Below, piece by piece: positions 4,362 through 52,261 of a stretch of DNA of 64,000 nt. Numbering within the stretch: the first letter of the stretch is position 1; each line of letters begins with the position of its first letter. Under the pieces are notes generated by a model. That model was not told the DNA's origin. It saw only the letters and a list, made by a program, of their open reading frames with translations, and did no database searches. The stretch is from Paragordius varius. Taxonomy: Eukaryota > Animalia > Nematomorpha. The position numbers and the translations under genes are program-made. The DNA lies in assembly GCA_964247055.1 (NCBI GenBank), contig OZ176054.1:1364001-1428000 (forward strand). The letters are read 5' to 3'.

Positions 4362-7300
4362 TCATGTAATTTAAAAAAACATTTATCTTAGAAATTTTAT
4401 AAAAATAAAACCGATATTATTTCAAGTGAAAAATAATAGATTAAAATGTTGCCATTTACCAGCTCAAAAAAAACCAGTAAGTACTAGGTAAAATTTGTAA
4501 AAAGACCATTTTTATTCAATGATATTTGTCAGTAAATACTGGTAAACATAGTATGTACTGGATAGTAAAAACAATATATTTTTTTATTTAATACATAGCT
4601 AGTATTTACTGGAAAAAACCTAGTTTTTAGTATATACTAGCTTTTATTTAGCAGGCCCAATAAATGGATATCAGAAAAGAGTTTAGAGATAGCAGAAAAG
4701 CGGAGAAAAGCTAAATTAAGAGGTGATAATAAAATGGTTAAATTATATAACAAAGAATTTCAACGACAAATAAGGAAGGATTATGAAGATTTTTTAATTT
4801 CTGGAAAAGGAATTAAATAACAAAAAAGGATTAATGCAACCAATGTTCCAGAAACTGAGGCAAATGACTCATAAACCTTTTATATCATCCCAAAAGATTA
4901 AAAAAGAGAATGGCACCATATTGTGCAAACAAACAGAAGTACGAGTAAGATGGAAGGAATACACCCAAAAACTCTATCAGGCTCCTCAAGCAAAAGAGTT
5001 GCAATTAAAAGAAGAAGAACGTGATCTAGATATACTAAGAGATTAGGTTGAATTAGCCTTAAAACAAATTCCTAACAACAAAGCGATGGGATTAGACAAC
5101 ATCCCAATAGAGTTCATAAAAGCTATTCCTGTAGAAACGTTACACAAGTTATGTCAAAAGGTGTGGGAAACATGTGAGTGGCAAACTACTGGATATCTGT
5201 ATATCTCCCAATATACAAAAAAGTAGATGTACTCCAGGGCGAAAACTACCGGAATATATCTCTTATTAGCCACGCTAGTAAGGTCTTACTAAAAATAATA
5301 CAAAACAGGATGCACAGTATCATACAGTCAGAAATACCAGAAAATCAAGCCGGATTTATGAAGGGAAAAAGCACAAGAGACCATATCTTAAACATGAGAA
5401 GGAAAATGGAAACATCCAGAGAATTCCAGAAAGAATTAAATATGTGTTTTATTGATTAGAGACTAGCCTTCGATTCGATTAACTATGACTCGTGGGAAAC
5501 ATTAAAGTTAGTAGGAATATCATCTCACTTAATAAGATTGATTAGCTCTCTCTATGTAAAACAAAGAGCGATTATAAGAACATCAGCGGGGGACACAAAG
5601 AAATACCTATCGTGAAAGGAGTCAGGCAACGGTAATGCTTATCCCCTTATCTGTTCAATATGTGCACAGAAATGATAATGAGGAGTTAGATGGTAAAAAT
5701 ATTGGAGTAAGAATAGGAGGGAGAATCACTAATTTAAGGTTTGCAGACGATACCACTCTTTTAGCTGAAAGTGTAAATGATTTGAAGGAATAGATTGAAG
5801 AGATTCGAAAGGAAAGTTTTTGAGTTATGGTCTCTTAACCCTAACAAAACCAAAATATTGTGTACTGGAGAAAAGCCTACAATTATTATAGAAGGGGTAG
5901 AAATAGAAATAGTTAAACAGTTAACGTTTTTGGCCGCAATAATTTCAGAGGACGGGTCTTCAACTCCTGAATCAGAAAGAGAATAGGATTGGGTAGAGAA
6001 GCGATGACCAAATTATTAAAGATTTGAACCAAAAAAGATTACTCTATTGTTTCGTTCTCCCGGTCACCACATATGGATGTGAGAGCTGGACTCTCAGAAA
6101 AAGGGACAAAGAAATGCTCATGGCTTTCGAAAGGAGCTGCTGGCGTAGGATGCTAGGATACACATGGAAGGATAAAATTAAGAATGGAAAACTAACAACA
6201 GAAATAAAACCCAAAACAAAAATCCTGGAGATAATTTTAAAAAGAAAGTTAACATATTTTGATCATATCATGCGATCGAATTCTGCTAGAGAAAGTACAA
6301 TGTTTGGGAAGGTGGAAGGACAAAGTAAAAGAGGCCGACCACCGATGAGGTGGTTGGATACGATAAAAGAAGAGACTAAAATGACATGGAACGGTCTCAA
6401 TATAAAAGATAGAAGAAAATGGAATGAAATGGTGTAAACTATATCCAAAAAGTCGTTTAGTACTTAGGAAAAACCAACCAACATTAAAAGCTGTGCTATT
6501 ATTATATTAAATTTTAGTGATTGTTTTTGGGATCCGGTCCTAAAATTCTGGGTATGATTAATATGTAGATTAAAAATGTATAATCATTAAAAAATTTAAT
6601 ATTGAAACATATTTTATGGCATTTCAAAGCATGGTGCGAATCTAGTAACACTCTCAAATATTAAAAACCTATCAATAATCTAGTAATTGAACATTTCCCT
6701 CAGATTTCAAATTTGATACTATTTGCTTTAAATACAATTTAAAATAACCTGAAAAAAACTAAAGTTTAATCTAAAATATAAGGTAATATGTATTATAAAT
6801 TAAAAACAGAGTTTCTGAAATTATTGTCCGCGTTTTCAACATACCATATTACCATCAAATGCGCTTCAACAATTATTAAAAATATTTCCTAAAATTCAAA
6901 AATTTAATTATATAATGGCTAAAATAATTTTACTGTTGAGATATGGATTTTATACAACCTTACATTTTATGAAAAAAATTTGTGTATAATGCGTTAAAAA
7001 GATTTTTAAATTCGACTTATACCCCAATAATCAAATAAATCGCTCTGGGCTATAAAACTACCTCAAAAGTTCATGGTTTTATAAAACTTATAAAATAAAA
7101 AATGGCCAATGCTCTCGTTTGTTTATCCCAATTTTCTCAAACTCAACACTATGTCTTTTTTTATTTCATAGCGTGTAGCAGGCACAATAATATATAAAGG
7201 AGTTAACTGGTAAATCATTATATAGTTAGGGTTATTTTATATAGCTATATATTGAAAACTGTTAAAATCGATTCGAACGAAAATAATTCAAAAATTAACC

Positions 7301-7405
7301 ATATAATTAAAAATATATGGCGCCCTCTACATTTATAATTATATTCATTAACATATCATATATATTAAATTAAAAAATATAAGCTTTCTAATTATATATT
7401 AGAGA

Positions 7406-9716
7406 TTAGTTGTTCCTTGGAATAAATTCGATCTCAAGTTCTTGATCTGACATGATAATTGGCTTCATTATTGGTTTTACATTCTGACTTGATTGTAGTT
7501 TATATTTTTTAAGGATCTAAAATTTATAAAATTATATAATATTTCAAATTCAAGCCGTTGTAAATAAATTAATGCTGAAGGAAAAATTATAAAATATTTT
7601 AGGATAAATAGTTTGTACTACCACACTGTGTGCTAATTTGAACAAAAAGCTCTTTTACTAAAAAAGTCCTCTTTTTTAAAAGTTATATATATTTTACTTA
7701 TTAAGAAAACACATTAATTATTAAAATATATGATTTATCCATCAAAAAGGTACTATAAAATATTTGATAAATATATAATATTGGGCTATAAAATTTCGTA
7801 TTTGTCTTTTACCATATTTAAAATATCTCACGATTGGGCTAGCTTCTCATAGTTTCACTCATTTTGTTAAAAATGGCAATTTAGAAAATCTAATCATAGG
7901 GATATTATACTTAAAAAATATCTTAAGATGTTATTATGACACTTAAAGTCCGCTTGGCTTGAATAACATAAACTTGTCTTTAACAATTCTCTGTACTAGA
8001 TGCAAAAGCATTGTCTAGCAATCATATGATTTTAATCAAAAAATCTAGCATACAAGACCGGTAGCAAACTATATATTTTTACTTCTTATGTAGAGATTGA
8101 TTGATAGGATTGGATATTAAACTCATCTGCTACCTTATATATTTTAAATTAATACTTACTTTGGCCAACGTAATGTAAATTTCTTGCTCTGCTAATCTTC
8201 GACCAGGACATTGGCGGGCCCCATGACCCCATGCCAAATTGGCTACAAAGGGAGCCATATCAGAATTTGGCAATTTGGATTCGTCTTTTTGACAAGCATT
8301 AGTTGGGGATTGTTGACTGACTTCTTCGCCATATTCACTCTTAAGCTTCCGACCAGCCCGAATCCAACGTTCAGGCTCAAATTTTTCAATGTTGGTAAAT
8401 ATAGAGGGGTCTCTGCCCATAGGCCATAAACAGCCCTGGACATGAGTCTATAAAGAATAAAATATATATTTTATTGAAATACGTTTATGGAGAGGGCACA
8501 TATTCGAATGCATATTGATGAATTTTTCATTTATTTTATATTACGTTAATATATATATACACTGTGTGCAAAAAAGAGGCCATTTTGATTTAACGAAAAA
8601 AATTTTCATGAGATAGCTCATGACCAGCGTATTCATTTGCCGCAAAAATTTTTATTTGTTGACAACCTAGTTTTTAAAATATTAAGAAAAAATTGAAATC
8701 GAGCAAAAAGTTAAAATTAAGAATAATTAAAAAAATAAAGAAATTTTAAATATTATGGTTTATTATCATGAGATATTTTTAATATATAAATAGCTTCAAA
8801 TCATATAGTTTTGGGTTTCTGTAAAATTTCAGGTCAAAAGATGGCGCTTTTCTTTTATCACACTTAAAAGACAAAATAAATTAAATGAAACTATATAAAA
8901 TATTTTTTTAATTATTTACTACCTAAACTACTATTAAAATCTTAACATATTATACTCAGGAAATTATACTATATCAAAATAAAACCAGAAATATTGTTCT
9001 TTTATTTTTCTGTCATCTGGTTTATGAGTGTATAAAAAATTTATACTGTTTTATTTTGGAATCTCACATGATTAGAAATTATTAAATATATATTATATGC
9101 AAAATATGAATTAGTGGAATATCAACCAACAATCCGTACAAATCCCAATACAAATATTAATTTGTCATAAAACAGACTTGTTACAGGAAATTGTAAGGAT
9201 TTTTTGGTTGATATTCCATTATTTTTAAATCCTATTTTGCATATAATATATATTTAATAATTCCTAATCATATGAGAATCCAAAATAAAACAGTATAAAC
9301 TTTTTATACACCCAAACCAGATGACATAAAAAAGCAAAAATAAAAAACAATATTTTTGGTTTTATTTTGATAGTTTATTTTAGTGAATAAAATATGAATG
9401 TTAAGATTTTAATAGTGAGTTTAGGTAGTAAATAATTAACAAATATTATTTTAATATAGTTTTATTAAATTTATTTTGTCTTTTAAGTGTGATAAAATAA
9501 AAACCCATTTTTTGACCTGAAATAGAAACCCAAACTATATGAATTGAGGCTATTTATACTTAATTATCCTAAATTTTCACTTTTTGCCCGATTTCGATTT
9601 TCTCTCAATATTTCAAAAACTAGGTTGTCAACAAATAAAAATTTTTGCGGCAAATGATTACGCTGGTCATAAGCTATCTCGAAAAAAAACTTTCGTTAAA
9701 AATTTTTTTGCACACA

Positions 9717-40889: not shown

Positions 40890-43800
40890 TCAAAAATTGA
40901 GTTTACCAATCAAATTATGCATGCAAAGTTTATATAATTTGGAATTTTTCTCTTGTAATTTGACATTTTCGTCGAATTGTTCAATGATTTTCAAATGATC
41001 ACTTTTATTAATATTAATATCAACGGCATTCTTCATTTCTACTTTATTCAAAGAATCATGATTTGGCATTTGATATAAAATCTTATTTATTTCCTCCACT
41101 TGATTTTTTGATTTTACAAAAAATGTGTCACTATTTAAACTTTTGTCTTCTGGTGAAGTATTATTTTGAGCATTATTCGTTTTGTAATTATCAAAAACGG
41201 ACTTTTTTATCCAAAATGACAAATCCTGTCTGTTTAATCGTTTAAATTGTTTAGTGTTTGTTGAAGATATATTACGGTTACCCATAGTAATATCTTGAGA
41301 AATATTAGAATTTAGGTCCGAATTCTGGGGTTTTTGATTGTTTGTATTGTAAAGTTTGGCGGATTCATCGAAACTCGGTAAGTTATAAAAAGATGATTTA
41401 TGCTTTTTAGATTTCGGATTTATCCGATTTTTGGATGATAGATTTGCACTAAGCGTATTATTGTCATTGGAAATTAATAATTTTTCCTCACTAGCAATTT
41501 GCTCTTTTTTCGGTTTAATGTTTGCTGTGATGGTAAATCCTAACAAATGATCTAAAATATATGCATGTAAAAATATAATATAACATATTAATTATATTTA
41601 TATGTATTTAATTAAATTTGGAAAAAAATGCAAAAACCACTTTTAACCAAATATACATATCTAAAATAAATTAGAATGTTTTATGAGTGACAGGAAAATT
41701 GCCAACTAAATAAAAGCGTAAAAAGGCGGCACTTGCATTAATCTAAACAAGAATGATTAATTACGTTAAATGAGCCTAAATATTAAAATATGAGTTTCTG
41801 ACGCGCTTGACTTGTTTCATAGTTAAGAATATTTTATACGTCCAGAAAATATACATAAGTTTATTTAATCTTGTAAAATAAAGGAAATTTTGTAAACTAA
41901 ACCAAAAAATCATGATATATAATAAAATAAATTACCATAGGGTGTATGGAAAGATTTAAGGCAAAATCCTGTTTTGTAATCCCAAATTTTGATATGAGCA
42001 TCACTGCTCCCTGATACTAAAGTGTGGGCACCATAGAGATCATTGTAAGGTAAATTTTGTAATCCAATTATACACCCTCTAAAATTGGACATAAATTAAA
42101 TGTTAATTTTTAAATTTTAAATAACAAATTCACCCTTGAACAATTCAAATTCACCCTAAAAATAAATTATGTGTTTTCGAACTAATATAACACATTATTA
42201 ATATAAAATATATCTTTATGGCATAATTTATTATTTTTTCAGTATTATTTTAATTTAAAACAAAATTTTATTTTTTAAAAATATATTGAAATATAGGTAA
42301 TTTTTTATCTTGTAAAACATGTCATTTTTTGAGGGTGAACTTGAATTGAGGGTGAATTTGAATTGTTTACGGGTGAATTTAAACTGTAAATGGAATATTA
42401 TGTACTTGTGTCCTTTAAGCACGATTGGATGTTCATTTTCGTTGGCATCTTGGAATGGTTGGGTTGATCCCTAAATAATTAATCAAACATCAATTTTAAA
42501 AAAGGAAAAAATTTAGAAAATTTGTCTTAAACATATTTTAAAGAATGAATTAAAAGTATATAATTGCAAAAATTATGAACATTAGACAACAAAATTACCA
42601 AAACATTAATGTGATGTAGGTGAATGTCCCCATTGCGCGACCCAATAAAAATGGTGGATTCGTGCGGATCGCAAATAATTTTGCTGGGTTTGTAACTCAA
42701 AGCGAGGGAACATAGCAATTTTTCTTTTTGGCTCAAATCATATATCTATGGCAATAAAGTTAAATTATATCAAGTGTTTAGCTTTGGTAAATAATACAAA
42801 TCGTTAGATTTTTAGAACTAAAACTAAATGTAATCTTATCGATTAGTCTCCAGTGTTCTGATGATTGTAAATAATTCAAATAGTATCCATGTAAATTTTT
42901 AGCTATAATATAATGGTGTATTTTGATAAAATGATGCTTAAAATGTAATTTAACAGGTTTATGCATCAAATTTAAACCTATTAAATTTCCCAGGATATAA
43001 ACCAGATTAATTTTTAAATAATCCAGAAAAACGTGTCTGAAAAGAGAAAGATGATACGATTGTTATAGAATTAATCCAATAATAAAATATTACCATTCTT
43101 ATCTAAATTTTAAACTATATATCAGACTTTTATAAAATAAATAATATATGAAATTATTTATCAATGCATTAATAATAAATTCATATAAGAACCGCGATTA
43201 AGGCCAAATAAAAAAAACTAGCTTATTCATCATTTTCTATTTAGAAATCAATTGGTTAGGCCAGTTAAAATTTACAAATATAATTTATAAAATTTACATA
43301 TAGCTTTTGATCCTGAGAAATTGAGTACAGACGACTTTCCCAATCGTTCGAAGTGGGGCAAATAACATGAATATCAATGACAGGCATTGTGTTATGATTG
43401 GAACTAAAGAGCGGTTCTTGATTTATGGTTTGATCTAAAGTTAAATCAATCAATCTAATTTTTATTGAAAAAAAATACGATGCAAAGTGCCAGATATGAG
43501 TAAAATTATCTTGACCCGATGTGATTAAATAGGTAAGATTGGGTGTAAATTTTATCACATTAATTTCTTGATAATGATAATCCAGGTCACAAAGCATTTG
43601 TCCGCTATTCAACTTCCAAATCTGAAAACGGGATTTAAAAGCTAAAACTAAATATAAACCATCAGGAGACAAACAGGTTAGGGTTACTGGATTTTCTGTT
43701 TCAAATTTACAATTTATTTGCTAAAATAAAATAATCACTTTTTACTTACATAGTCTTGTAAACTATTGTAAAATGTTATCATTGGTTTATCGCTCCAAGA

Positions 43801-44013
43801 TGTGATTATAAAAACGTCTTGGAATACATCAAAGTTATTATAATGCGAGGTGCCTTTTTTTAATTTATTGGTATCGGAGGCAAAAAATGGAATTTTTAAT
43901 GCATGTTTTAAAGTTTGACTAGTAAAATCCCATATTTGAATAAAGGGGGAAAAACGTTTTTGGGAAAATCCGTTTAAAATTAATTTTAGGTCCGTAGTTT
44001 GCGAATCGAACAT
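40890..44013 (-). CDS. WDR18: WD40-repeat protein WDR18/Ipi3 (Rix1 complex subunit), ~560-567 aa
   Basis: Exons 44013-43750, 43720-43298 (possibly split by a 24-nt intron at 43455-43478), 42745-42599, 42470-42406, 42078-41936, 41551-40890. Motifs LSPDGLYLV, HYQEINVIKFT..YLITSGQD, HNTMPVIDIH, LYSISQDQ, LKGHK, LVSGSSDAHIKIWD and the C-terminal coiled coil ENVKLQEKNSKLYK follow the WDR18 pattern. The start codon is uncertain by a few codons. Confidence 0.87.
42127..42395. mobile_element. Second copy of the 21-bp-repeat MITE, left end truncated, in a WDR18 intron
   Basis: AAATTCACCCTTGAACAATTCAAATTCACCCTAAAAATAAATTATG... and ...GGGTGAATTTAAACTGTAAATGG match 10552-10917. Confidence 0.8.
43721..43749 (-). 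other. 29-nt spliceosomal intron (WDR18 intron 1)
   Basis: GTAAGTAAAAAGTGATTATTTTATTTTAG. The unspliced frame hits TGA after 4 codons; splicing joins ..SLQDY to QINCKFETENPVTLTCLSPDGLYL in frame. Confidence 0.8.
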
Positions 44014-44088
44014 GCTGAACACAAGTATATTTCACACACTCATGAATTCATATTGGTGAAGATAACCAAAAATTAATATTTTTATTCC
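44014..44088. promoter_or_regulatory. Putative bidirectional promoter / overlapping 5' leader region between WDR18 and CNOT3
   Basis: Only 75 bp separate the divergent ATGs (44013 minus, 44089 plus). No specific motif was identified. Confidence 0.55.
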
Positions 44089-47000
44089 ATGGCTGATAAA
44101 CGTAAATTGCAAGGTAAAAAATTTATATAATAGCAGCGGAAATCGACAGATGCCTTAAAAAAGTCAGTGAAGGTGTCGAACTATTTGAAGATATTTGGCA
44201 AAAGGTATCGTTTCTATTATAGCCATATAAACTAACTGGAAATATTTATGGATAATATTTAAAATCTGTGTATTTTTAAGGTAAACTCAGCAACAAACGC
44301 GAACCAAAAGGATAAATATGAAACTGATTTAAAGAAGGAAATTAAAAAGTTACAAAGGCTTCGGGATCAAATCAAAACTTGGACTGCTAGCAATGATATT
44401 AAAGATAAAAGGCAACTTCAAGAAAATAGAAAATTAATTGAAACACAAATGGAACGATTTAAAGTAATTTAATGTATTTTATATTGATAAAATAATTTTT
44501 AGTTTTTTTAACGTTATATTACACATTGTCCCAAGTTTTTGTATTTAATTTTGTAAAAAATAATTTATTTTATATGATAATTTTTTTCAAATAAAATTTT
44601 ATAATATGACAGTATAATTATAAATTATGCCCAAAAGTTAAACGATGGAATATTTACGCTGATTTTAGATGATATCTAAAAATATGTCCTTTTTAACTGA
44701 AATATTTTTTAATTAAAAAATTCAAATCATTCAAAAATAGTATCTTTCTTTGCCATAAAAATGTAAAAAAATATGCAAAAATCCAAAAAACCGGTATAAA
44801 TGCCTAAATATAAATAAAAGGTTTTTTTTAAAAATCATTGGTATATCTTATTAATATAAATACATTTTATACTAATAATATCGTGTATGTTAGCCAATGA
44901 CAATTTTAAAAACAGCAATTTGGCAGGTTAGAGATGTTGTTATATAAAAATTAGTTATAAGTTTATTTGCATGCATAAAAATAAATAATTATAACAAAAA
45001 TACAAAAATGTTTTAACGAACAACAAAAGATTTGATTACGTTAATATCCGGTGTCACATTTTACCTTTTAGTATTTAACTATAAATAATGATTTCTTTAA
45101 TTTATTAGGAATATTTAATTTAATTTAATTTTATGTTTTTTATGGCCGGTAGAGTTTTTAGTGGTTAGGCAAATTTAAGCTATCGTAAAATAAAACAATC
45201 TACCATCAAAAATATAGAGAAGGGACTATAATTTAAATAGTTTTTATCTAAAATTTATTTTTTATATTTCAAATTAATACTGTTTAATTTCTATACTCAA
45301 ACTTAGTATATTTTATTATAAAATCAAACCCAAATTTTTAGTTTGTAATATAGATACGGTATAGTTATTAAAATATTAAACTAAAAAAAATTTAAATGAC
45401 TAATTGGGTTAAAGCGACAGGTTAAAATATTAAAGCACGAAACATTTATTAAAATTTTTTATTTTTTCCCAATCTTTAGATTTATTATCAATGTATATGC
45501 AGTATATCTTTCTTATGATATATATAGTAGCAAATACATTTTTCACTAACCAAATTTTATTATTTAGATAAATTAATGTTAATTTTCAATATTCACTTTG
45601 TTCCTAATAATTAATATTATACTGAAATAATTAACACAAAATTAATAAAAAAGTGTTTAATCTTGTTTTTGGTTCATTATAAGGGCTATAAAGCCATAAG
45701 CTAAGTTTGTGGTAAGATAATCAACTTGAATCAATAACTTATTATTTAGGCAGAAAAATAGATTATAATTTTAGGTGCTGTTTATTATCATAAGCTCATT
45801 TTTCTTTAAACCATATCTCAAGTAAACCAATTTCCATAATAGTAGTGATTGGTAAAATTTAATAATTTATCGCATTTTACACTCATATGCCTAGATCATT
45901 GAAAGAGAAACCAAAACTAAAGCTTACAGTAAAGAAGGTCTTCAACAAACCACGGTGACATCCACGGCGACAAGTATTCAACCCGCTGGACAACATTCCA
46001 AAATTTCACCCAAAAACTCTCAAACTAATTTTGCTTTTTCCGCAATCAGTGGGTCCACTATTGGCGGAGAAAATAACAACACAATTAATTATCCAACAAG
46101 CTTGGAATTATTAATGGATTCTGCCCTTGATAAGAGTGTGGCGATTCCATCATTATCTGACCTGCCCATTTTACCAAATGCAACAGCATCCATTCAACAA
46201 AACACTCAAATGACTGATTCTTCAAATAATTTGGTCAATACTGCATCCACAGAGCTCTCTACAAACACAACGATGAGTAGTTTAGTTAGCGTTCCCCTAG
46301 CAAATCAAAGTGCAGGCAAATTTAGTAGTCGATTTACAAAGTTGTTTAGGAAGGGAAGTGGTTTCCTAACAGGCAATCACAATGTCACCAAGAATAGCAC
46401 TCAGCCAACATTACAAAATATTAGCATTACCGACTCTACTAAATCTTCCGTTATTAACTATAACCAAAAACAAGTTGACACGTTTTTAGGACACAAAACT
46501 GAAGATGAATCATTAACTACCAACCATGCAAAAAATATCAGCAATAGCAATATAAATAATAAACGCCCTTCACTAAGTAACTCTACCATTGCAAATACAG
46601 AGGATGGCCTTTCCCTAAATGGCCGTAAAAAGGAAGAACTTAAGATTTGGCTTAAGGTTTTGTTTTATATTTTATTTTTCATGCTATTTTAATGATTTTT
46701 ATTTGAAATTATACTCAAGAGTGTATTTTTTATGTAGGCATCGATTGAAAAATTAAGTGATCAGATACAAACCTTTTCGGACGAGATTGATGAATCTCAA
46801 AATCAAAACAGCAAAAAGAAAAAACAGGAAAAGGAGGTAAAATTAAAAATTGCAGCTATTGAAATTATACGGACAAAACCTAAAAATATAAGGATAAATA
46901 TTTTTTTCTAAAAGACAACCATACTTTTTAACTCTTTATTTTTTTAGATAAAAGTCATTGTTTTTAATTGCTTAGTATTTAATAGATAGTAAATTGGTAA

Positions 47001-50000
47001 CACCTACAATATATAATACAATTGTAATTAAATGATTTTTATAAGATAAATTAAGGTTTAAAAGTGTGGTTGTCTTTTTAGTAAAAATATTTTGTCTTTA
47101 TTTTTTTTATTTTGTATCATTTCAAATTTTAATAATATAGAAACAGGATAAACTTGACCTGCTAAAAACGTTGATTGAAAAACACAACTATCATATAAGG
47201 CGATTGGAAAACATTTATCAACTCTTGGATAGGGAATTGCTTGACACTGAACATGTAATAATAATAAAAATAATTAGCCACTTTTTATTGAAATAATATT
47301 TATGTAAAACGCAATTTTTATCTATAGGTTGAAGCTATCAAAGATGATATTGAGTTTTACACTGAATGTTGCAGAGATGAGGATTTCAAAGAAAATGAAT
47401 ACATTTACGAAGACCTTAATTTGGATGAATTGAGTAAAACAATTGCTAAATTTAGTTCTTTTAATTTTTCGACTATTTTAATATCTTGGTTTTACTTTTA
47501 ACTAATGGCTGTCTGTAAAACAATTTCCTATAAAAGCCTTTTTGATTCGGGTTTTAAGTATTAAATTGAAAATGATGCGTAGCTTTTTTTCCAAAAACGC
47601 ATTTTTTATACCATTAGCTTTTTTGCTATGTTTTATTTTACAAATACATGCTTAATACGAATATTTAAATTTGTGATCCTTTTATTATTATGCATTTTAA
47701 AAAATTGCGCTATGCGACACAAAAAGCATTAAATAATAAATGCTGATAATATTTCCGTATAATAATTTTCATGTTTCAAATATTCCTTTCCTGCTTTATC
47801 ATTATAAACTAATTATATTTATTCTCAAAAGATTGCAGTTTGACAATTTTAGAATTTTATAATATTTTATAGATGATGAATATTCCCTAAACACTTCCTC
47901 CATAGCTAGCAATAATAGTCCAGCCTCAACGAGTGTGGCTCCAGTCAGTCCGCTCTTTAAGACTTGCACGGATTATAAACCAAATACTCAGAATACGGCG
48001 GCCAGCAATAATAGTAAAAGCCAATCTACAACGGATAAAAAGGTGTTGGATAGCAATCAAAAGCAAATTTTTATGGTATTTTTATTGTGCAATTTTTAGT
48101 TTAGAACAAACAGAAAGAAGGAATTTTCAATCAAAAACTTTATTTTTTATTAGCCTTGAATTTTTAATATATAACCTAAATAACTACATTGATGTGTTTA
48201 AATGTGAGAATTTTACATGTCTATAAATATTTTGCAATTCAGAACCATATAAAAAATATTATTTCCTTTACAAAATAAAAATTTTGCTATTTTTTTAGTT
48301 TTTACTGACAGATTTGTTGTTATTTTCTTATACCATATTATTATTTCTTTGAAATATTAGGAAGAAACTAGATCTTTGAATCAAATGACTAGAATGGAAA
48401 AAGACAAACAGCAGAAAAAGGATGATAATCGAGCTGAAACCGTTTCCCTCAATGAAGATGTACAAATTTTATCATTGATCTAATTTAGATGATTTGACCC
48501 CTCTTCCCATTTACCCGCATCAGACCTTTTTAATCTCTAATTTTGATTTCTTTGATCTTGTTTAATTTTAATTTTGCATAAAGGAAAGATTTTTTTATTT
48601 TTGGCTTATTATGAGGGCCTTAAAATACCCTTAAACTAATGGGTATATGGGAAGACCACTTTCAATTATTTAAATGGTTATAACTCAAAAACTGAAATCT
48701 CATTTAAGAATCGGATTTTAATCGGCTTATTTTTAAGCCCGGGGTCTATTGTAACTCATTTTTTTTGCTGTTCATGTTTATAACCGCAAGAGTTCATATA
48801 AAAATTTAGAAAATTTAATAACTAATATCCCCACTAATTATTATGTATATTTTGTAGATGGGTCAATCATCCACCTCGTTGCGCAGTGGTGGAAGTGCCC
48901 GAGGCCATAATAATAATAATAATACTACAAATAATTGGAATAATTTGAGTGCTTCATCCTCATCAACATCAATGGCTTCTGCAAATAAATATTCTTCTTT
49001 CAATAAAAACAACCAATCATCATCAACATCCTTTAAAGCTGGCAATTCATTATTTACCAACTTTGAAACACAAAACAATAGCAATAAATCTTTAACGCTT
49101 AAAGCAGTCAACAAAACACCAAAAGATAAGGAGAAAAAACTTAAAGAAACTCATGTCCCTTCTGCCACATCCTTAATTTCCACTTTATCTTCAACGCTAA
49201 AAATTGCAAGTGTGCCGACCAAATCAAATAATAATAATAATAATATCAACATTCCAACAACCTCAATTGATTCATTCAATGTGTCATCAAATAATATTAC
49301 ACAAGGGAAAGAAGACACCACTACAAGTAAAAGGCAAGAGAGTGCAAAACTAGCCAAATCAAACATAGCTAATCGATTCAATGCAAATAATCATGGGTCA
49401 GGAGACGAAAAAATGGCCGACGTGGCAAAAAACAAACCAACAATTGTGTCTGAAAGTAATAATATTTCCTCACTTATTTCGCTTGCTCGAAGTCAACATA
49501 ATAAAAGACAAGTACAAGCCAACATTCCTTCTTCGTCAACCATCATGCAATCTGGAGATTATGATCACAAATTGGAAGGTGCTAAGATTGAACGCATAGC
49601 AAACAGTGAAAATAATTTCATAACTCCTAAAAAATTTGGAACTGCTACCGCAACATCTGAAAACAAATTTGAATTGTCTGACTTGTTTGAATCTTTCAAG
49701 GAATCATTGCAGCAAAAGCAGAATGTACCCATGACTAATGGCAATAGCTTTATTATAAGCTCTACCGCCTCTCCTACCAACTCATCCAACCCACTTTATC
49801 AAGATTTGAGACCACAAAGTAGTTTGCCAAATAAAACCTCCATAAACGATCACAAGTATTTTAAATACATATATTAATTTTCCCATTTATATATAAAACT
49901 GGGTGTTATTGGTTATGATTGTATTAATGACCGTGAATGTTTCCGCTTTTTTAAATAATTGTTAAATTCTAATATACTGATATTTAAATTATTGGTAAAG

Positions 50001-52261
50001 CATTTTCGTACTGTAGCAATTGTAAATTTTAATTTTTTTATATTATTTGTAAATTCTTATCACTATATTAAGTCTAATTGAACAATTTTGAAAAATGTTT
50101 TTGAATTGCTTGGTTTCAACATATATCTTTACATTTCTGGTCGAGATTTATTTAGTTCACTAACGCTAATTGAATTTATTTTCCATTTTTATTAGATTTT
50201 TAGCTGAATTAATGCATCGAATGGAGCCAGCGAAATCTATTAATGATTCAAGTTTGTTACCTTATATTATACAATTTACTTAAAATATGACAAATTTTTT
50301 TTGTCCAAACATTATAATATACCATTCTACAGTTCAAATTAACCCTCGAACAATTCAGATTCACCCTAAAATAAATTTAGTGTTTTGTAAGATGAAAATT
50401 AATATAATACTAAAAAAATAAACTATGCCATTAAGATATATTTCATATTAATGATGAGTTATATTAAACCGAAAACACTTTGAATTGTAAATGCTATATC
50501 ACAATCACAGGTAACATTCAAGACAAAACTGCCTCACGATTATTTCGCCAAAATAATGAAGCATTTATTCCAGCTTTTTTGGGGGCTTGTCCGCTCGGTT
50601 CTTTGGATTATTATAATGAATACTATAGCAACTATAATAATAAAAATGGAAGCAATCCAATAAATTTTATGCACCTCGAAAATAACTCAAACAATGGATT
50701 TGATCCTCTCTATTATGCCAACAACCACCATCCATCTAACAATATCAATAGCGCTCAACAAATGGTATTTAAGAATCGGATTAGAAATGGATTTATACGC
50801 GATAAACTTGCTAGTTTAGATCGGGCTTATACCATGGCATCAGGGAATGCAAACTACTCAGCCTTTGGTGCAATAAATCCCTATTCCCTTAGTAAAGAAT
50901 CTGATATTAATAATACTTGTCAACCAAATAAGTCGTCTAGTATGATTGGTGGCGATTTTTTATCTTCCCAAGAAAATTATGGGAAAGGAAATGGAAACCA
51001 GGAACCGGAAGATACAAGACCTGCAAAATTACTGTTTAACTCTGATCGAAATAAGTAAACCCTTTACTATATTGAAAATTTAAATGAGTTTGTATACTAT
51101 GGTCTAAATTTCTTTGTATAGAACAATTTCCATCGTAATAAATATTAATTATGTATAAAATGAATTTTGTTAACAAATAATAATTATAGCATACCTTATC
51201 GATTAAACGGGAAAATAGATTTGGTAGTTATGAGAATTCGATATAATAGTTAACATTGCAAGGAGTGGTGAAAATTGTATTAGCTTACAATTAAATTATA
51301 ATATGCATACTTGAAACTATCATGCTACTTGTGGGACTTATATATATATGGATATATATATAATTTTTAAGATTTCGCCTAAATCGAATTCCATACAATA
51401 CACCTCCCCATTACAATACTTTTCAACATTCATTTGGTACCTTGTTTGCAGAGTCTCCCGAATTTTATTCAAAGCTCTCAACTGAAACTCTTTTTTTCCT
51501 CTTTTACTATTTTGAGGTTTTTTTGCATCCATTATAATATAAATATTTTATTAATAAATTAGAGTAAAAATTGATATTATACCGATAAAAATTAAAATTA
51601 AAGGCAAATATTTTTAAAAAAAAAATATTGTTGACTTTTATAGGAAAATTTTTCTTTAATCTTGTTATGTTACTTATAAATTCAATTTTGTAAATTAATA
51701 GGTAATAAATTTAATTTGTTTTAATAAAATTTATTTTATTTTTTGCTTGTATAGGGCACTAAAGCACAATATTTAGCAGCAAAAACGTTAAAAAAGCTTG
51801 CTTGGAGGTTTCATACAAAATACTTGATGTGGTTCCAAAGACACGAAGAGCCAAAAACCATAACTGACGAATATGAACAGGTTTATTATATTGATTATCT
51901 AGAAAAAAATTCTTCCGTAATATTACTCAACCCGAAATTACGAGAAAATTTTTTGATTGCCCATATTTAACTATTTTAAATAATTTTTAATTAATTTATT
52001 CATAAAATAATTAATGTAATCACACAATACTTTTTATAAAATCCCAATTTAAGTTAAAACAGACTTTAATATAGACAAAAATCATTTTATTGTGGATTAA
52101 TTCGTTGTTTATATCATTAGTTATATACTAGTATAATTGATAAATATTTTATATTGTAACAACAGGGAACATACATTTACTTTGATTATGAAAAATGGTG
52201 TCAACGCCGCAAAGAAAATTTTACGTTTGAATACAAATATTTGGAGGACAAAGAGTTGTAG
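44089..52261 (+). CDS. CNOT3: CCR4-NOT subunit 3 (Not3/Not5 family), ~1,200 aa, 15 exons
   Basis: Exons 44089-44113, 44137-44204, 44281-44463, 45895-46656, 46738-46836, 47141-47254, 47328-47433, 47873-48042 (or 48075), 48361-48459, 48858-49855, 50196-50251, 50511-51054, 51372-51516, 51755-51880, 52166-52261. N-terminus [31 protein letters not shown]...[17 protein letters not shown]...[17 protein letters not shown]-box [53 protein letters not shown]...[11 protein letters not shown]...[13 protein letters not shown]. Exon boundaries in the low-complexity middle are less certain. Confidence 0.96.
44114..44136 (+). other. 20/23-nt spliceosomal intron (CNOT3 intron 1) with NAGNAG acceptor
   Basis: GTAAAAAATTTATATAATAGCAG lies between MADKRKLQ and EIDRCLKK. 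The unspliced frame hits TAA. Confidence 0.85.
50320..50400. mobile_element. Third, truncated copy of the 21-bp-repeat MITE, in a CNOT3 intron
   Basis: TACCATTCTACAGTTCAAATTAACCCTCGAACAATTCAGATTCACCCTAAAATAAAT matches the left end of 10552-10917. Confidence 0.65.

Follow-up and report, generated by a model that had tools for sequence, protein, structure and literature searches.

Very small spliceosomal introns are known from ciliates (about 25 nucleotides (nt) in Paramecium and 15-16 nt in Stentor), from chlorarachniophyte nucleomorphs and from microsporidia. In Paramecium, the stop codon or frame shift present in retained tiny introns has been linked to surveillance of unspliced messenger RNA (mRNA). 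Among animals, introns shorter than 30 base pairs (bp) had been considered absent (PMC13644364, Mol Biol Evol 2026). The same study describes ultra-short introns, with medians of 22-27 bp, in the myxobolid myxozoans Henneguya, Thelohanellus and Myxobolus, and finds that among the 51 metazoan genomes compared only Dicyema japonicum otherwise has introns below 30 bp (PMC13644364). It predicts further lineages with such introns; Nematomorpha are unmentioned in its comparison (PMC13644364). Here we describe a 23-nt stretch with the properties of such an intron in the CNOT3 gene of the horsehair worm Paragordius varius. It lies at 44114-44136 of a window of 64,000 nt (positions 1,364,001 to 1,428,000 of the forward strand of contig OZ176054.1, assembly GCA_964247055.1; all positions below are those of the window unless another contig is named). 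On the evidence of the genomic sequence, this stretch is likely, with good confidence, to be a canonical U2-type GT-AG spliceosomal intron spliced to a CAG acceptor at a length of 23 nt, and we hold with greater confidence still that it would be spliced in one of two forms, of 23 or 20 nt.

The reading rests on the two exons that flank the intron. CNOT3 (Not3/Not5) is encoded on the + strand and spans 44089 to about 52258. Its ATG (44089-44091) is the first past an in-frame stop at 44074-44076. Exon 1 (44089-44113, + strand) encodes MADKRKLQ and the base G of codon 9, and the vertebrate-type database proteins P0122 and P0125, found by word search, start with the same eight residues. Exon 2 (44137-44205, + strand) begins with CG, which completes codon 9 as G|CG (Ala), and continues with 22 residues from EIDRCLKK. 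The exons were searched singly, not as a joined spliced protein. The whole of exon 2 can be aligned with human CNOT3 (residues 10-31, 21 of 22 identical) as present in the solved ribosome complexes 8bhf and 9c3h. It also aligns with residues 8-29 of yeast Not5, CNOT3 and Not5 being the best matches in the PDB, and with positions 7-31 of the Pfam Not3 profile. Within this one gene, PF04065 is found on exons 2-7 and PF04153 on the last two exons, as in a CNOT3 orthologue. The Not3 profile matches this locus alone in the 110.6-megabase (Mb) assembly, so the gene is single-copy and there is no intron-free copy on which to rely.

Between the two exons, intron 1 (44114-44136, + strand) is a 23-nt GT-AG intron in phase 1 with 17% G+C and an alternative 20-nt form at 44114-44133. 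Left unspliced, it reads GGT AAA AAA TTT ATA TAA and stops after five codons, the in-frame TAA lying at 44128-44130. The length of 23 is not a multiple of three, and excision of either 23 or 20 nt restores the frame; a transcript that retained the intron would run into the TAA after five codons. The sequence-only reading of this DNA had proposed that MADKRKLQ(g) and EIDRCLKK are parted by only 23 nt (to CAG) or 20 nt (to TAG) with the frame kept either way, and both the coordinates and the sequence are as it described. It had also claimed that the stop at TAA makes splicing obligatory, with which the TAA and the length of 23 nt agree.

The signals of the intron are those of the U2 type: it starts with GT and ends in TAGCAG in the context AAG|GTAAAA ... 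TAGCAG|, the exon end fits the register of U1 pairing, and removal regains a conserved, collinear frame. A candidate branch motif, ATAAT, is found 6 nt before the CAG, and an A among those 6-11 nt upstream of the acceptor would probably serve as the branch point. We infer from the genomic sequence that splicing occurs, which acceptor it uses and where the branch point lies. Assignment to the U12 (minor) type was considered and rejected, as the 5' end is GTAAAAAA, not of the RTATCCTT type, and there is no TCCTTAAC-like branch site.

The best copy of the U2 small nuclear RNA (snRNA; 177.7 bits) keeps the branch-site-binding GTGTAGTA, and the best copy of U1 (124.3 bits) keeps ACTTACCTG at its 5' end. 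Both genes are present in many copies. Neither snRNA gives any sign of a reduced or altered spliceosome. The sequence-only reading had proposed a check for snRNA reductions; for U1 and U2 none was found, and the binding motifs are canonical. Because U1 and U2 keep unchanged 5' splice-site and branch-site binding motifs, we presume an ordinary spliceosome, and it is by this machinery that the intron would presumably be removed.

A further line of evidence comes from the position of the intron in other animals. Among 120 short N-terminal proteins brought up by a word search with exon 3, 46 contain EIDRxLKK. A true N terminus, for example MADKRKLQG, precedes the motif in four of these, and in the other 42 unrelated residues stand directly before [G/A]EIDRxLKK, the last residue before Glu being G or A in 40. 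This is as expected if genomic open frames run through ...AG| into an exon that starts inside a Gly or Ala codon. Three contigs were fetched to compare positions. A marine metagenome scaffold (L012) encodes MAATRKLQ followed by G|GTATCT and 225 nt ending in CCTAG|GT GAA, and a Logan contig (L013) has the same exon 1 (MAATRKLQ) followed by 1041 nt ending in TTCAG|GT GAA. The contig of the dragonfly Ladona fulva (L011) has the acceptor TATAG|GA GAA at the same boundary, and its exon 1 was not found within 10 kilobases (kb). The hairworm intron is thus in the same codon and the same phase (1) as the ordinary intron of other animals. Since codon and phase agree, the 23 nt would be the same intron, shrunk: an orthologue of the first coding intron of CNOT3. 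In one further database protein, P0213, about 21 unrelated residues separate MAARKLQ from EIDRTLKK; this protein is apparently a genomic frame through a short, in-frame, stop-free intron at the conserved position in another organism.

The DNA itself is well supported. Contigs of four public DNA runs from three studies were aligned to 42000-47900, and those of all four carry the 23 nt. One contig of run X6 (record 30) covers 44111-44261 with zero differences. In the deep run X1 there are two haplotypes at about equal depth. The second has C>A at 44134, inside the intron, where the AG is kept and the acceptor becomes AAG; it also differs at 44162 and 44165, both synonymous changes at the third base of a Lys and a Val codon. 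This is the pattern expected of a non-coding spacer between two translated exons. Confirmation of the genomic sequence, another check proposed by the sequence-only reading, was thus obtained from DNA contigs of four runs and two haplotypes, and no longer intron was found among the differences listed. Two of the runs, X3 and X6, are labelled as two other organisms from other studies and contain the locus at very low depth; the X6 contig listed at the locus is identical, and X3 has some variant alleles in common. Such a pattern is as expected if hairworm DNA is contained in samples of another organism, for example a host.

The CNOT3 intron is not alone in this genome. Profile searches of the assembly located seven more obligatory GT-AG introns of 23-36 nt in five other genes. 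Two are in BiP: one of 23 nt (L005:992-1014; G000:C4:12482291-12482313), removal of which restores TYS-C-VGV via TG|T, and one of 28 nt (L005:1247-1274; G000:C4:12482546-12482573) beside an intron of 69 nt. A proteasome beta subunit gene has a mini-intron of 27 nt with two in-frame TAA codons, an HSP110-like gene one of 30 nt, and a CCT subunit gene has two, of 28 and 36 nt. The seventh is within the window, in a WD40-repeat gene on the minus strand (43721-43749; 29 nt, GT-AG), where retention causes a frame shift and a TGA. In each case, removal restores a frame collinear with conserved residues, while retention shifts the frame or brings in stops; stops are present in all three mini-introns with a length that is a multiple of three. 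All eight mini-introns, CNOT3 included, have 9-22% G+C, begin with GTAA, GTAT or GTTT and end in TAG or CAG, and several of the donors are a full GTAAGT or GTAAAA. Six of them, in five genes, measure 23-29 nt and so fall below 30 nt; the other two are of 30 and 36 nt. At 23 nt, the CNOT3 intron is one of the two shortest in the sample. Six of the eight contain the tetranucleotide TAAT; its distance to the acceptor is 5-11 nt in five of these and 3 nt in the sixth.

In the genes that contain mini-introns, larger introns are common too, both at about 70-80 nt and in the range from hundreds to thousands of bases, which argues that the mini-introns are a distinct class and not a genome-wide rule. 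Spacing of profile matches in HSP70, actin, CCT and proteasome genes gives a census of intradomain introns that misses tiny 5' exons and provides examples rather than a histogram; by this measure, most introns within the domains of CCT, HSP70 and actin have lengths of 60-700 nt. A genome-wide median intron below 30 nt was considered and is contradicted by these intradomain sizes and by the other CNOT3 introns (75, 1431, 81, 304 and 73 nt). The latter also bear out the earlier statement that the same gene has introns of 73-81 nt and of more than 1 kb. It had further been stated that 29-nt and 24-nt cases occur within 700 bp of the CNOT3 intron. The former, in the WD40-repeat gene, is obligatory, but the latter (43455-43478, minus strand) is in frame and free of stops, and for this reason cannot be told apart from eight codons of coding sequence. 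In the window as a whole, GT...AG pairs that bridge two open frames show no enrichment relative to control dinucleotide pairs, whatever the length, because noise from the AT-rich sequence dominates this census.

The end of the CNOT3 intron offers two acceptors, as TAG (ending at 44133) and CAG (ending at 44136) form a tandem TAG|CAG at 44131-44136. In this it resembles the NAGNAG tandem acceptors, in which the choice of AG shifts the product by one codon. Those are known from introns of ordinary length, whereas here the entire intron is only 20 or 23 nt, so the choice may depend on distance from the branch point. An intron that is real but has the upstream TAG as its main or a substantial acceptor (20 nt, 44114-44133), giving one extra Ala or both products, is a doubtful alternative to which we assign a small share of our confidence. 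Either AG preserves the frame, the TAG comes first after the donor, and the downstream acceptor of the second haplotype is a weaker AAG owing to the 44134 C>A variant. The protein and its relatives speak otherwise: the conserved Glu is residue 10 both in human CNOT3 and in the product of the 23-nt form, but residue 11 in that of the 20-nt form, and in other animals the split codon stands directly before Glu. The common variant at 44134, moreover, is silent under the 23-nt form and would change Ala to Glu in a highly conserved N terminus under the 20-nt form, when its two neighbours are synonymous. The nearest A's would also lie about 3 nt from the TAG, as against 5-11 nt from the acceptor in five of the six mini-introns with TAAT. 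On the strength of residue numbering, split-codon position and the silent variant, CAG is favoured as the acceptor that fits better, although both acceptors may be used to some extent. With the CAG acceptor, the splice in the pre-mRNA would run from the donor G|GTAAAA (44113|44114) to the CAG that ends at 44136 and join MADKRKLQ to (Ala)EIDRCLKK.

Two explanations would dispense with the splice altogether. CNOT3 might be expressed from another first exon or a downstream start, leaving the MADKRKLQ block as a relic. That the ATG lies 75 nt from the ATG of the divergent WD40-repeat gene, with very little room for a promoter and a 5' untranslated region (UTR), would fit this idea, which we nevertheless consider highly improbable: all eight residues match the canonical N terminus, the ATG is intact and AAG|GTAAAA stands at the conserved intron position. 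Exon 2 is conserved, lacks an ATG and carries only synonymous variants, and is therefore translated from upstream; the next in-frame Met does not come until the end of exon 3, and a start there would delete the conserved N-terminal region. Less probable still is that the 23 nt arose by faulty assembly or represent a private insertion, a null allele, for which nothing but the unusual size speaks. The gene is single-copy, similar introns occur in five other genes, and the same sequence is found in four runs from three studies and in both haplotypes of the deep run; given this agreement and the haplotype pattern, assembly collapse or a private null allele is very unlikely.

Several observations weigh against a spliced 23-nt intron and are to be set beside the evidence above. 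There is no polypyrimidine tract, the last 12 nt of the intron being without a pyrimidine run, and TAAT is not significantly enriched over shuffles in the eight mini-introns (P = 0.086), which have no clear branch motif. Every sequencing run found to contain the locus is DNA, and five runs marked 'RNA?' and labelled as the same species have next to no words of the locus. Word searches of the protein collection with CNOT3 exon 4, BiP exon C and CNOT3 exon 3 returned nothing above 88% identity; this species or a close relative is absent from that collection. Finally, that no indel falls in 44114-44136 holds among the indels listed, and the lack of a length variant rests on these together with the contigs that span the site.

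Downstream of exon 2, the gene continues on the + strand with introns of ordinary size. Intron 2 (44206-44280) is 75 nt, GTATCG...TTAAG, and its adjoining exons are collinear with the Not3 profile. Exon 3 (44281-44463) has 61 codons and matches Pfam Not3 positions 31-90 (E 2e-28). Intron 3 (44464-45894), of 1431 nt, is followed by exon 4 (45895-46656), in which the opening residues give way to a long lineage-specific low-complexity insert. Intron 4 (46657-46737; 81 nt) precedes exon 5 (46738-46836; Not3 profile positions 127-169), and intron 5 (46837-47140; 304 nt) consists mostly of a very high-copy repeat (about 46858-47063). Exon 6 (47141-47254; Pfam Not3 positions 163-197), intron 6 (47255-47327; 73 nt) and exon 7 (47328-47432, its 3' end approximate; Pfam Not3 positions 199-231) complete the Not3 region. 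The NOT-box is encoded by an exon at 51755-51880 (Pfam NOT2_3_5_C positions 58-101, E 1.6e-13) and by the last coding exon at 52160-52258 (positions 101-126), which holds the end of the NOT-box and the stop. Very long Asn/Ser/Thr-rich low-complexity inserts lie between the conserved domains of CNOT3, at 45895-46656 and 48858-49874, and have no relative in the protein collection searched.

The WD40-repeat gene, called WDR18 in the sequence-only reading, is arranged head-to-head with CNOT3 on the minus strand, with its ATG at 44013, 75 nt from the CNOT3 ATG at 44089. Such spacing implies either a very compact shared bidirectional promoter or 5' UTRs that overlap or are extremely short. The exon downstream of its 29-nt intron gives WD40-type matches only below the Pfam cut-offs. 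Two stretches of the window, 42125-42390 and 46858-47063, have a word depth about a thousandfold over their flanks in every run and show many joints to the opposite strand, which suggests a short repeat of inverted structure in very high copy number. Most of CNOT3 intron 5 is taken up by one copy, and an intron of the WD40-repeat gene contains another.

Other features of the genome were noted in passing. The mitochondrial contig (G000:C44; L009 and L010) is 15,693 bp long and contains perfect inverted repeats, with arms of up to 208 nt at 100% complementarity; several of the hairpins are inside open frames of 218-343 codons. Long perfect inverted repeats in mitochondrial protein-coding genes, or 'coding palindromes,' have been described for Nematomorpha (PMC6649704, PMC10380579), and the present species resembles its phylum in having them. 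Just upstream of COX1 in the mitochondrial contig, at about 6750-7450, a 72-nt hairpin unit is repeated in tandem. The G+C content of the window is about 28%, near the value of 26.9% in Gordionus montsenyensis, and the assembly measures 110.6 Mb, less than the 200-300 Mb given for published hairworm genomes. An intron-free fragment of RPB1 with a frame shift and a stop is present at G000:C2:11083391-11084938. Its parent gene (G000:C3:5270889-5273771) is one open frame of 1415 codons across the copied region, and the copy is thus uninformative on splicing, as the parent has no intron there for comparison.

If the reading is correct, an ordinary metazoan spliceosome can remove introns of 20-30 nt, and the presence of introns of 23, 75 and 1431 nt in one pre-mRNA makes CNOT3 a natural system in which to study how a single spliceosome gauges such different distances. 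There would be practical consequences as well. By default, STAR treats gaps below 21 nt as deletions, and gene finders of the AUGUSTUS type set minimum intron lengths above the 23-nt size. Because annotation pipelines set their minimum intron lengths near or above this size, hairworm genes would be mis-annotated, and a short first exon like the eight codons of CNOT3 would be missed or wrongly joined. STAR and BRAKER were the tools of the Gordionus genome paper, which gives a BUSCO completeness of 71.6%. Part of the reported loss of universal genes and of the low BUSCO values in hairworms could then be an artefact, and claims of large-scale gene loss in hairworms deserve re-examination.

Among known systems, the tiny introns of ciliates, nucleomorphs and microsporidia share with those described here their size range and an obligatory nature imposed by a stop or a frame shift. 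They differ in that these organisms are not animals, the tiny size is a rule of the whole genome and some of the spliceosomes are reduced. Parasitic flatworms, which have small 5' introns beside large 3' introns, offer a likeness of arrangement, as the mini-introns of CNOT3, BiP and the WD40-repeat gene lie towards the 5' end. The small intron class of parasitic flatworms, however, peaks above 30 nt, whereas 23-30 nt is common here, and the mini-introns of the proteasome and CCT genes are also inside a domain.

The closest counterparts are the introns of Myxobolidae and Dicyema. These, too, are of the canonical GT-AG kind, measure about 20-30 nt, leave no space for a polypyrimidine tract and lie at positions conserved with other animals, in parasitic lineages (PMC13644364). 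The branch-binding region of U2 snRNA is likewise kept, and for myxozoans no sign of a reduced or altered spliceosome is reported (PMC13644364). In Myxobolidae and Dicyema, though, the short length is the genome-wide median, and the genomes are tiny and compact with few transposons (PMC13644364), whereas the hairworm mini-introns are one class beside introns of 70-80 nt and of kilobases in the same gene, in a repeat-rich genome. The splice signals of Myxobolidae and Dicyema are reduced to GTa...AG (PMC13644364), in contrast to the full GTAAGT or GTAAAA of several hairworm donors.

With regard to hairworms themselves, the word 'intron' is absent from both the Gordionus genome paper and the comparative Nematomorpha preprint. 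No report on hairworm introns appeared in the titles and abstracts of the literature searched, a body that did not include the Current Biology paper on the first hairworm genomes. The sequence-only reading had put the CNOT3 intron forward as a candidate for an undescribed system. This is too strong, because introns below 30 nt were published in 2026 for two animal lineages, the myxobolid myxozoans and Dicyema (PMC13644364). The kind is already known; what appears to be new is the lineage, and the mix with long repeat-filled introns and full-strength donors. Horsehair worms are thus, we think probably, a third independent animal lineage with introns below 30 nt, and the first in which such introns share their genes with ordinary and kilobase-sized ones, in a repeat-rich genome with canonical U1 and U2.

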